From the NCBI GenBank assembly GCA_004764695.1, contig SMSO01000025.1:806001-870000 (forward strand): 64,000 nucleotides of DNA, written 5' to 3'. The translations under genes were made by a program, and so were the position numbers. Numbering within the stretch: the stretch's first letter is position 1; each line of letters begins with the position of its first letter. This document shows positions 60,171 to 64,000 of the stretch, in pieces. This stretch comes from Schizochytrium sp. TIO01 (lineage: Eukaryota; Protista; Bigyra: Labyrinthulomycetes). The notes under the pieces are model-generated. The model worked only from the letters and a program-made list of their open reading frames with translations. It had not been told where the DNA came from and did not search any database.

Positions 60171-61131
60171 TTAAACAATGCGCTCAAGTTCGTGTGCGTA
60201 GTTGAGCGAGCTCTGAATGAGCGAGTGTGAGGGAATCTGGTCAGCAAGGTCCTTGACAGGCTCACCCTTAAAAGTAATTTTGGATCCATTGACCTCCCAG
60301 TTTTCCTTCATGGCCATGTAGTCTTCAAGGGCCTTCTGGGAAGAAAAGTTCATGAGCTTTTGAGCAGCACTCTGTAAAGTGTAAAGACCCAGGAAATAAA
60401 AAACAGTCAGTCTCATGGCGAACCTTTCAAGTTGACACATAAGCCTCTCTCTTCAGAGAATATAATCGTATGCGAATTGAGCTTCAATTATATAAAGAAA
60501 GAGAGGGAGACAGAGGGGTGGTATACAAGGTAGGGATTTGATAACTTACAATGCTCAATGTTGAATAGGAAACCTCAACACAGCTTGCGATTTCCTCACG
60601 AACAGTCTCCTCCAAGTTTTCGAGAAGCGAGGAGTATGTTTTGCAGGGAGTGCGCTTCCGGGCAGCCAAGACTTTGTTGTATGATCCCTCACTGAGGAAC
60701 TGCTCAAGCTCAGTTACAAAGGTGATACATTTGTCCGCACGCTCCTCCATGGAGACAAGCTCAAGGAGAGAGTGGAACTCAGCGAGCTCCTGTTGCACGA
60801 GAAGCACGAGAAGCTCGAGACCAATCATCTCTCCGCGCCTACTGGAATCACCAATTTCTGCCCGGTATTCGAAGTTAAACGGTCTCAGAAGCTGGAGGTG
60901 ACGAGCAAGAGCAGCCTTATCCTGAGCAGCGACACTGAGAACAACAGCGGATTCGTAAATATCTCTGGCCAACTGACGTTCCTTCTTGGAGGACCTTGTC
61001 GTCTCCGTATTAGGAGGCAGTGATTCGAACTTAATCAGCTCCAGCTTGGCCTTGCGCAGCACCTCCTCGCCGCTGCTGACCTTGCCGGCCTCAGCCCATT
61101 TGCGAAGCTCCTTTGCCAAAGACTCTGCCAT
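60171..61131 (-). CDS. RPN12: 26S proteasome regulatory subunit RPN12/PSMD8 (two exons: 61131-60550 and 60371-60171; 260 aa)
   Basis: LARDIYE, LAEFHSLLE, LEQFLSEGSYNKV, TVREEIASC and C-terminal YAHELERIV; ATT|GTAAGT...tttacag|AGT in-frame intron. Confidence 0.93.
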
Positions 61132-61766
61132 CTTTCCACTCAGTCCTTAAATTTCTACGAACGCTTCCGAACGTTGCCAGGGCCCTCGACGATATTATCG
61201 TTCCGAGAGAGCTATGGCCACGCCTACTCAGTTTTGCTTGCGAGATGCGTAGTGATAGCTTCTCCAACTTTGTTGTTGAAACAAAGAAACAAAGACAGAG
61301 TATCGATGCTTACCCAGGAGTACTAATAAAATAATGGGCAAGACTGAGCAATAACTATCTATTTACACGAGCACAAGAGAAGCCTGACGAAGCCAAATTC
61401 CACTCTCAAGAAAAGAACTTATACAGCTATACCCTATAGTGCCGAAATACAACTTCACTGTAGAATAATTAAACTCTATAGAACAAATGGGTATACAATA
61501 GAACTAATCCGGCGAACCTTCCTTCTCTCCCTTTCGCCGTTTAGATTTTGTGAGTACATAAGCATAGGAGTATGCTATGCTTAGCTATATTTTAGCAATA
61601 GTCCTATATAAGTGTTGGATGGAATTTCGATTACTTACACGGAAATCCGGAAGATTCTGAGATTACAGGGGTAATGAGATTCCGCAAAACTTGCATTTCC
61701 TATGGTGACGTGGGGAAAGGCCCAATCATGGGTTTCACAGCTAGCCCTTCACTCAAAGACATAAAT

Positions 61767-62110
61767 TTAAATTATGTCCTTAGACAGGTAGCGCAAAAGG
61801 GTGCCTCTAGCGGCGTGGATATCACGATCTGCAATGTGTTTGCACTTGGGGCATTTGAAAACCTTGCATTTTCCAAGCTTGTTGTAAATGTCAAGTACCA
61901 CATTGATTGCATCTTTTAACTGTACAATGCTCTCGGCAAAGGACCAACTTACACTACTGGCAGGGGGGGAGCTCAGCTTTGTAAATGAGCGCTAACCACA
62001 AGCCAAAGAACGACACGTCATTCGAGCTGTCCTGATTTTGATTCATCTTTGTTAACTTTTTGAGGTTTGAAATTTAGCAAAAGGATAACACAGTAGTTTT
62101 CACAGTACAA
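61767..62110 (-). pseudogene. tnpB: TnpB/Fanzor2 RNA-guided nuclease 3' fragment
   Basis: CxxC...CxxC zinc ribbon (CNQC, CPKC), RuvC-III DRD and stop at 61769-61767; several frameshifts. Confidence 0.85.
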
Positions 62111-62139
62111 GCCTGCAGTGAATCCCGGTAGTCCAACAT

Positions 62140-62495
62140 AGGGCGCGCAAGCCCGGCCTTTTGAAGTTGACCCCTCCAACGATGTCTTTGTAGATGGTGG
62201 AAGCGTCTGGATGGGCACACCAATCTAGCGTTTGAAATTCTCTTTCTGCTTGGCGGAGGATACTCTGGCATATATAATGGTACGGTCAGTGCAGCATTGC
62301 TCGCGGCCGCCGGGGCAAACCATAGCCACAGATGCACTCAACGTTGTTACTTGGGTACATACGATCGCCTCCGGGAAGCGCCTGCACGGCATTTGCTAAG
62401 GTGCCAGACTTCCGGCTGAAGTGCTTTGCTGGCTTGTATTGAAGGTTTCCTTCACTTGTAGTGTTTAGAGCTTGGTAGTTCCTTAAGCGTGCCAT
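62140..62495 (-). pseudogene. tnpA: IS607-type TnpA (HTH plus serine recombinase) 5' fragment
   Basis: YARVSS catalytic motif at 62272-62255; KDIVGGVNFKRPGL at 62189-62148; contains stops and frameshifts. Confidence 0.8.
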
Positions 62496-64000
62496 TTTCT
62501 TACCTGGCCTCAACTATCTTTACAAAGACCTAAATAATTATAACATATCATTTAGATAGAATCGTCACTACCATTTGGAGGTTATGTAGGTTGTAACGTT
62601 TTCATAAGTACAGTACTAGCTGTCGTTGCTGGACAGAAGTTATGAGTAATGCTCTAAACGTCGGCTTCGAAGCTCTCACGCTTATGCCCGAAAAGGCTAC
62701 TAGTATTTCCGCAAGCCATAGCTTTTTCTTGCATGCAGTCTACTGAAAAGGCATCATGACGTATAGCTTGAAACAAGTGAAACCTATATGTCGCTCTCTA
62801 TGTGCTAATTATTAGGGTTTTCACGATTGTAGTGTCTCACTAGAAACGCATTTCCGAGTTGACAGAAAGTTGAAATTTTAAATTCTAGCTCAATGTATCT
62901 CGAGTCTGGTCTAGTCATCGACTAAAGCCAGCTTTCAATCTTATGAACTAGTTTAGTTTTCGAATCTGTAAGACACCATGGATGCTAACGGCTTGGTGCA
63001 AATTTATATATTCTAGCCTCGAGTCATGGGTCAAGAGTTAAGGTTTGATTACTGCCGCCTTTTATAAGCTCCCCTCTAAATAATTGCGTTTACTAAATGT
63101 TCGCGCAGAAGATCTCAATTTTTCCACGCGAAGATTTTGAAGGCCTTTTGTTTAACGATCTTTGTGAAGCGAGAGAGCATCGTTTGTACGATGTGGCAGG
63201 GTCCTTTGAGGCTAACAAAAAAGTATTCTTACCATTTACATTGAAGTTAAGAGGGATTACTTGTGAAACAATAGCGATTTATTGACTCTTTCGATCCTCA
63301 GCTCAAGTAATATTCATAAAGAATTGAACGCATGCTCGAATTATTGAGCAATTCTACTTTGCTTCATTTTATGTATTTACCAAACCCAGTATTGCAAATT
63401 TGACGGCTAGCATTATGAGAAAGACTGCTAAAATGATACTCGAATATTGACGTTCGCTCGTTCAACAACTTCAAAAGAGCAACAGACTTTAATTCAAGTT
63501 ACTTCAAATTCATTGTGCCAGTAGAATATTATTCGTTCATACACAAATTTTCCGTGGCGGCCGGGCCCGGCGTCTTTCATTTTCATAGAATAGGGAGAAG
63601 CAAGCCAATACGAAACGTTCTGATTAAGTAATTGGTTGGGCATCTACCGTTTTCGTCCTTAATAATTGTTCGTGAACATTATAGGGTTCCAGCGAATACT
63701 CGCCAAGAAACCAGAAAATTTCAATTCTGAGTACGCGACGGCAATTGTGTCCCTGGGTTTTACTCTTTCATTTTAGGACTGCAGAAGAGCAGCAATCCCT
63801 AACAGCATCACTTTGCTCTGGTGGTGATATCTCAAGTCAAAGAAAAGTACTCGTGTTTCTCAAATTCGAGTGCTCATTTTGCGATGTTCACGGCTGGAAA
63901 ACTTTAAAAACACGTTTATGTCATCGGTAGAACGTTCCATCACCTTTCCACTGTTTGTTCGGAATCAAATTTACATATCCTCCGAATGTCTGTCTTGTAC

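Follow-up and report, generated by a model that had tools for sequence, protein, structure and literature searches.

A dead short copy of an IS607-Fanzor2 element and its dispersed family of deletion derivatives in a thraustochytrid genome

IS607-type elements carrying a Fanzor2 nuclease are known from eukaryotes, stramenopiles included, and from giant viruses (PMC3627910, PMC10530073), with ISvMimi / ApmFanzor2 L79 of Acanthamoeba polyphaga mimivirus, ISvNY2A_1 and ACa-1 as named examples (PMC3627910; PMC10530073; doi 10.1101/2023.08.09.552727). The serine-recombinase TnpA works on the left and right ends, and strand exchange takes place at a short shared motif (doi 10.1101/2023.08.09.552727). 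The elements reported here, of which one relic lies in the 64-kb stretch of DNA that was analysed (the window), resemble these eukaryotic and giant-virus cases in having a serine-recombinase TnpA followed by a TnpB-like nuclease (HTH_OrfB, RuvC, zinc ribbon), in a structured 3' non-coding region that runs to the right end, and in the lack of a target-site duplication. They differ in their thraustochytrid host and in an extra N-terminal nuclease region of ~130 aa that is encoded over tnpA, while the flagged locus itself differs in being only a deleted, dead derivative. With the bacterial IS607 elements (Helicobacter pylori IS607, ISXfa1) they share the gene order, the recombinase class, a 3' guide RNA (presumed here) and insertion by recombination at a short shared motif, and the ...cTG at the left junction of the short copies and ...gTG at their right end are consistent with exchange at such a motif. 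Unlike the bacterial elements, they reside in a eukaryotic nuclear genome and encode a nuclease of 601 aa as against about 400, and the GGG target motif was not seen, the left flank here favouring ACT(G).

A further comparison is offered by MITE-like families and the bacterial IS200/IS605 PATEs, which retain both ends, have no transposase of their own and lie in unrelated flanks, as do the short copies described below. A single ancestral deletion followed by amplification to ~100 copies is a further likeness. In contrast to those families, the short copies have neither terminal inverted repeats nor target-site duplications, and at ~0.95 kb they retain recognisable coding remnants of both genes. 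Our literature search found no paper linking Fanzor to thraustochytrids, which is no proof of novelty, and within a limited collection of papers it found no earlier amplified IS607 deletion family in a eukaryote.

An earlier note, made from the DNA letters, had proposed a hidden IS607-Fanzor2 relic at 61767-62495. Three-frame translation of the minus strand recovered all of the peptides it quoted, each in its place: RTIIYARVSSAKQKENFKR terminates an open segment at 62228-62395, with YARVSS at 62272-62255 on base-by-base reading, HPDASTIYKDIVGGVNFKRPGLRAL lies within 62103-62285, YCENYCVILLLNFKPQKV within 62021-62224 and CKLVLCREHCTVKRCNQCGT at 61894-61953, and ...KCKVFKCPKCKHIADRDIHAARGTLLRYLSKDII reaches a stop codon at 61767-61769. 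The pieces are split among frames, with stops between them and in all frames of the window copy, and for that reason they are absent as one unit from the list of open reading frames, as the note had remarked. When the TnpA fragment of an intact element and a 601-aa Fanzor were compared by tblastn with the whole window, significant matches were returned at the relic only; every one was to the minus strand, in collinear order (TnpA, E 3.9e-7; Fanzor, E 3e-13 and 3.4e-9). The proposed serine-recombinase motif accordingly matches the TnpA of the full-length copy L031, and the proposed order of an IS607 TnpA followed by TnpB/Fanzor2 was borne out by the translated search that the note had suggested. 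At the nucleotide level (blastn), window 62277-62139 aligns with L031 1-149 at 73% identity and window 62104-61684 with L031 1384-1817 at 68%.

Profile searches, also suggested in the note, gave less. Seven stop-free pieces of the relic yielded one Pfam match, to the zinc ribbon PF07282 (E 2.3e-5), which at 24.9 bits falls below the cut-off of 26.3; no match was obtained to the resolvase or MerR HTH profiles. As the Pfam evidence was sub-threshold, homology was established through the genome's own intact copies. The MerR-like HTH remnant that had been proposed is rightly positioned and is non-significant by itself (E 0.27 against a viral IS607 TnpA, with no Pfam match); one viral relative (L061) does carry HTH_17/MerR. 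RuvC-I is deleted in the window copy, and the zinc ribbon and RD part are all that remains of the nuclease. With its frameshifts, its stops, the loss of RuvC-I and a decayed 3' fold, the window copy is dead. The relic is real and the note had its kind right; as a locus it is ordinary. The true unit, ~61655-62611, exceeds the span first flagged (Table 1). Its last ~25 nt are degenerate, and the right end, at ~61655, is placed to within a few bases.

Table 1. Features of the window copy and its neighbouring gene, in window coordinates.
Feature	Position	Strand	Evidence or remark
Whole short (S), non-autonomous IS607-Fanzor2 copy	61655..62611	-	~957 bp; blastn boundaries and 32-copy alignment
Left-end terminus GTACTTATGAAAACGTTACAAC	62590..62611	-	2 mismatches to the family 22-mer
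ACT just outside the left end	62612..62614	-	partly conserved in the family
Putative TnpA N-terminal HTH remnant TLANAVQALPGGDRMY	62355..62402	-	position upstream of the catalytic serine
TnpA serine-recombinase catalytic motif remnant RTIIYARVSSAKQKENFKR, then stop	62228..62284	-	homologous to the start of the L031 Resolvase
TnpA remnant in a different frame, ...HPDASTIYKDIVGGVNFKRPGLRAL..., up to the deletion junction	62131..62216	-	tblastn E 3.9e-7 against L031 TnpA
Family-wide deletion junction ...TTGGAC / TACCGGGATT...	62130..62131	-	L031 ~150-1383 missing, ~1.23 kb
Fanzor2 C-terminal remnant: RuvC-II region, CxxC...CxxC zinc ribbon, ADRD RuvC-III	61770..62130	-	tblastn E 3e-13 against the 601-aa Fanzor P0001; broken by frameshifts and stops
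3' structured-region homologue (presumed omega/fRNA scaffold) and right end	61655..61790	-	decayed in the window copy
Rpn12/PSMD8 26S proteasome subunit gene	60300-61131	-	~520 bp from the element copy

The same genome (64 Mb in 37 contigs) was searched at the DNA level with 61700-62560. Of 205 first-look candidates 42 gave scored matches, which span essentially the whole query at 69-84% identity. This search of the assembly was another check put forward in the earlier note. When the window locus was compared by blastn with 29 other loci, the same two boundaries were found in nearly all and the flanks were unrelated; the flagged repeat is a dispersed family with defined ends. A probe from the left end added 22 loci beyond the first search, and a 22-mer from that end, allowing up to 3 mismatches, occurred 53 times in the genome (one of these being window 62590-62611) compared with 0 times for its reversed control. 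The short family comprises at least 60 loci, and probably 100-200, spread over most contigs as discrete units.

The ends were defined from an alignment of 32 copies. The left end starts G/TACCTATGAAAACGTTAGAAC, corresponding to the G at 62611 in the window, and it is at this G that column conservation rises from <40% to at least 75%. Composition outside the end is random except in the three columns immediately before it, where A is found in 16 of 32 copies, C in 19 of 32 and T in 19 of 32; this ACT may mark a preferred target, TAM-like in kind, or may consist of weakly conserved terminal bases. The right end reads ...TGCAAGTTTTGCAAATTTTATAGGTTAATCTCTAAGTG, and short (…TCTAAGTG) and full-length (…TCTAAGAG) elements have homologous right ends. 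No flanking direct repeat of 4 bp or longer was found in 21 short copies with clear ends, a lack of target-site duplication that is expected for IS607. None of the 53 matches to the left-end 22-mer lies at a full-length copy, so the ends of the short family may have ceased to be recognised by the autonomous lineage of today.

The deletion junction is common to all 32 aligned short copies, with TnpA '...SLLD' fused to Fanzor '...TEIHRKLALWLCENY'. It reads ...TACTGGAC/TACCGAGATT... in the family and falls at 62131/62130 in the window, where the copy departs from the family junction only by an extra 9-nt loss common to L002, L003 and L030. An old full-length relic, L050, retains ~1.09 kb where the short copies have ~10 nt, and this retained interior together with the shared junction shows that a single deletion took place, after which the deleted element multiplied. 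The abrupt switch from TnpA to TnpB described in the earlier note is therefore real, but it is not the private decay of a unique relic. We regard it as extremely unlikely that a full-length IS607-Fanzor2 element was inserted at the window site and lost its middle during its own decay: although deletions of that kind do occur in this genome, the examples have other breakpoints (L053 lacks L031 ~232-1088, and L054 lacks the TnpA part), whereas the same junction recurs in every aligned copy at unrelated sites.

When the short family is reduced to a majority-rule sequence, the stretch matching Fanzor residues 13-77 is followed directly, at nt 490/491 and with no change of frame, by that for residues 475-601, and the TnpA frame meets a stop 16 codons past the junction. 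The family deletion leaves the long Fanzor frame in register (...ACAPYW-TT-EIHRKLALWLCENY...), and the junction would link the N-terminal extension to the part containing RuvC-II, the zinc ribbon and RuvC-III, an outcome expected by chance in one case out of three. No long ORF is present in the majority-rule sequence, and for this reason we claim no ancestral 'mini-Fanzor' beyond the in-frame junction itself. Every short copy has stops, and the open stretch over the junction ranges from 24 to 181 codons.

Relative ages were estimated from K2P distances over the shared 3' 460 nt. Full-length copies differ from one another by a median of 0.034 (range 0.002-0.123), short copies from one another by a median of 0.287, and short from full-length copies by a median of 0.351. 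On these distances the present full-length family is a much younger lineage than the short family. The divergence between short copies is uniform, at ~29%. The relic L050 lies at 0.265 from the short copies, about as near to them as they are to each other, and the short family and its then-autonomous partner thus go back to an old burst; this contemporaneous full-length partner was seen as dead relics only, such as L050.

The nearest relatives of the window copy, L003 (C24:878037-878957, minus strand) and L002 (C24:885253-886043, plus strand), sit 10 and 17 kb past the window end on the same contig. They are 79-84% identical to the window copy, with K2P distances of 0.19 and 0.20 compared with the family median of 0.29, and all three have in common a divergent right-end tail, ...TACC.... 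Given that their flanks are unrelated, L002 and L003 look like local secondary insertions.

In our reading, which we hold with high confidence, an IS607-Fanzor2 element long ago gave rise to a non-autonomous derivative of ~0.95 kb, and window ~61655-62611 (minus strand) holds one of its dead copies. One internal deletion of ~1.23 kb in an ancestral full-length element joined TnpA codon ~115 to the last ~125 Fanzor codons, leaving a short element made up of the two ends, the 5' part of TnpA, the 3' part of Fanzor and the guide-RNA-like 3' region. As RuvC-I is missing, this element had no capacity for an active nuclease, and a recombinase could likewise not be encoded. The short element would then have been copied to ~100 or more unrelated sites, with no target-site duplication, and the structure, the distribution of copies and established IS607 biology suggest that TnpA was supplied in trans by full-length elements of the same age. 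The copies have since decayed neutrally, the window copy marking an ancient burst and having no present function. As a fossil, the window locus changes nothing alone, and its value is as a pointer: an IS607-Fanzor2 lineage has long been resident in this thraustochytrid lineage, represented by an old burst, to which a non-autonomous family of ~100 copies belongs, and by a young, apparently active full-length family.

The young family consists of ~20 full-length copies in the same genome, and the expectation in the earlier note that intact copies may exist elsewhere in it proved sound. At least 10 of these copies have the TnpA frame (in the part read) and the Fanzor frame both open, and a search of the genome with PF07282 gave 17 places at which a frame is open for ~615-682 codons. 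Five copies (L034, L035, L037, L040 and L044) have one TAA in common, at codon 79 of the part of tnpA that was visible, and keep a Fanzor frame of 558-559 codons open; they look like a subfamily in which TnpA is dead and Fanzor intact, and which multiplied nonetheless. The young copies outside the 10 open and these five are broken.

The full-length copy L031 encodes the C-terminal part of TnpA (Resolvase PF00239, 6.1e-16) and a 559-codon frame overlapping tnpA, in which we found HTH_OrfB_IS605 (1.7e-9), OrfB_IS605 and a Cas12f1-like TNB zinc ribbon (PF07282, 1.9e-13). In an alignment of the nuclease from intact copies (A2), D357, E505, C512/C515/C530/C535 and RD541-542 are invariant. The best match of the L031 nuclease among solved structures was the mimivirus 'TnpB-like protein L79' (9b0l, E 1.7e-18), a Fanzor2, with Cas12m/TnpB-type entries ranked below it. 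On these sequence features the nuclease of the young copies classifies as a Fanzor2, and RNA-guided cleavage of DNA is predicted for it. A complete ORF of 601 aa, 91% identical, is present in an MMETSP transcriptome, which shows transcription, in a related strain, of an element close to the young family. The younger full-length lineage looks active in this genome even now.

The tnpA gene is nested in a second frame within the 5' part of the Fanzor ORF (L031:1-452, C32:2841116-2841567). The Fanzor N-terminal region of ~130 aa encoded there carries the motif ...C.PFW...LWSCT.T...SW[FY]T... and is conserved in relatives at 36-49% identity, and the same nesting was observed at two giant-virus MAG loci (L061:2610-4476 and L063:2728-4605, 31-35% identity). 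The overlap is the least variable segment among the young copies, with a pi of 0.022 compared with 0.034-0.062 elsewhere. A keyword search of PMC3627910 and PMC10530073 gave no description of it. The flank following the right end, ...CTAAGAG, begins TACCTGTACCTATG... in L035 and TGTACCC... in L048, both resembling the left-end terminus of the short family, TGTACCTATG; these flanks may reflect insertion beside end-like sequences.

Giant viruses are enriched for Fanzor2 and IS607 (PMC10530073), and when viral contigs were scanned 132 stretches were found to encode relatives, so that the window segment might be taken for debris of an integrated giant virus carrying an IS607-Fanzor2 element and not for a member of a cellular transposon family. 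We find this scarcely credible. The best of the viral relatives are only 25-38% identical in protein sequence, whereas non-viral relatives reach 45-49% and the MMETSP transcript 91%; the window copy stands as a discrete unit of 0.95 kb, with a host proteasome gene ~520 bp away, and the family to which it belongs is dispersed over most contigs. No close giant-virus donor was found in the scan. The earlier note was thus correct in supposing that this genome carries an IS607-Fanzor2 family, but the associated large DNA virus that it had named as another possible home of intact copies did not emerge as a close source.

The 3' region was compared between live and short elements. In two intact subfamilies the terminal 129 nt form four hairpins, with z-scores of -4.7 and -5.9, while short copies fold no better than their shuffles (z -0.13 and +0.46, and -0.83 for the window copy). 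In a 34-sequence alignment, a hand-drawn structure had 83.7% of cells paired compared with 37-50% when partners were slid; its covariation was not above that of shuffles, RNAalifold predicted no structure from the same alignment, and Rfam held no relevant family. The 3' region is thus a plausible omega/fRNA scaffold for the live elements; the short family has kept its sequence, and in the window copy it has decayed.

RNA-like contigs were found over the window copy in four runs that are not recorded as RNA, and which we treat as RNA-like because all skip the intron of the neighbouring gene (60372-60549). Contigs ~99% identical to the copy cover 61685-62168 (or 61639-62153) at a depth of 3-9, compared with 72-1245 for the neighbouring gene in the same four runs; these contigs break at k-mers common to other copies and show neither strand, ends nor level. 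The low-depth RNA is most simply explained as background or read-through, although the locus is not demonstrably silent. The same copy was observed at the same site under four organism labels, and the insertion is therefore fixed among these strains.

Three of the observations above could be taken to mean that the copy, or the short family, still functions, either as a guide-RNA gene acting in trans for the full-length Fanzor or as a 'mini-Fanzor': the deletion preserves the Fanzor frame, the structured 3' region is kept in full, and RNA contigs cover the 3' half of the window copy at low depth. We think this very unlikely, since an in-frame junction has a chance of one in three, the majority-rule sequence lacks a long ORF, stops are present in all copies, the RNA region of the short family folds no better than shuffles, and the copies have diverged from one another uniformly. 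The reading we prefer, of a trans-mobilised derivative that has since died, leaves room for a more specific proposal about the time of the burst, which we consider doubtful and put forward as speculation. The short family would have been a eukaryotic counterpart of guide-RNA-bearing mini-elements, with both ends and a complete Fanzor guide-RNA module, and would have reached its ~100 or more sites with two proteins borrowed from full-length elements: TnpA to move it, and Fanzor to secure guide-directed retention or homing at its own donor sites. If this were true, thraustochytrids would be a natural system in which to study the benefit of Fanzor2 to its eukaryotic transposon. To our knowledge, the biology of Fanzor in its native eukaryotic hosts is still poorly understood, and a protist that can be cultured and transformed, and that has TnpA and Fanzor intact, a presumed guide RNA and natural mini-elements, would be a usable model.

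The gene next to the window copy encodes the Rpn12/PSMD8 subunit. Its identity to the counterpart in Hondaea fermentalgiana is 89%, and to that in Mucochytrium quahogii 62%, which marks the genome as that of a thraustochytrid. The gene contains a 178-nt GT..AG intron (60372-60549, minus strand), for which spliced contigs were observed in the four runs, and the program-made ORF at 60484-61131 runs into this intron. Two long contigs of 7.5 and 9.8 kb, from the RNA-like runs X1 and X2, extend over window 62149-63900 and past the window end at depths of 409 and 210, 3 times that of the neighbouring proteasome gene. This stretch is ORF-poor, and runs X5 and X7 cover it only in patches at a depth of 2-13; it may give rise to a strain- or condition-specific long transcript.
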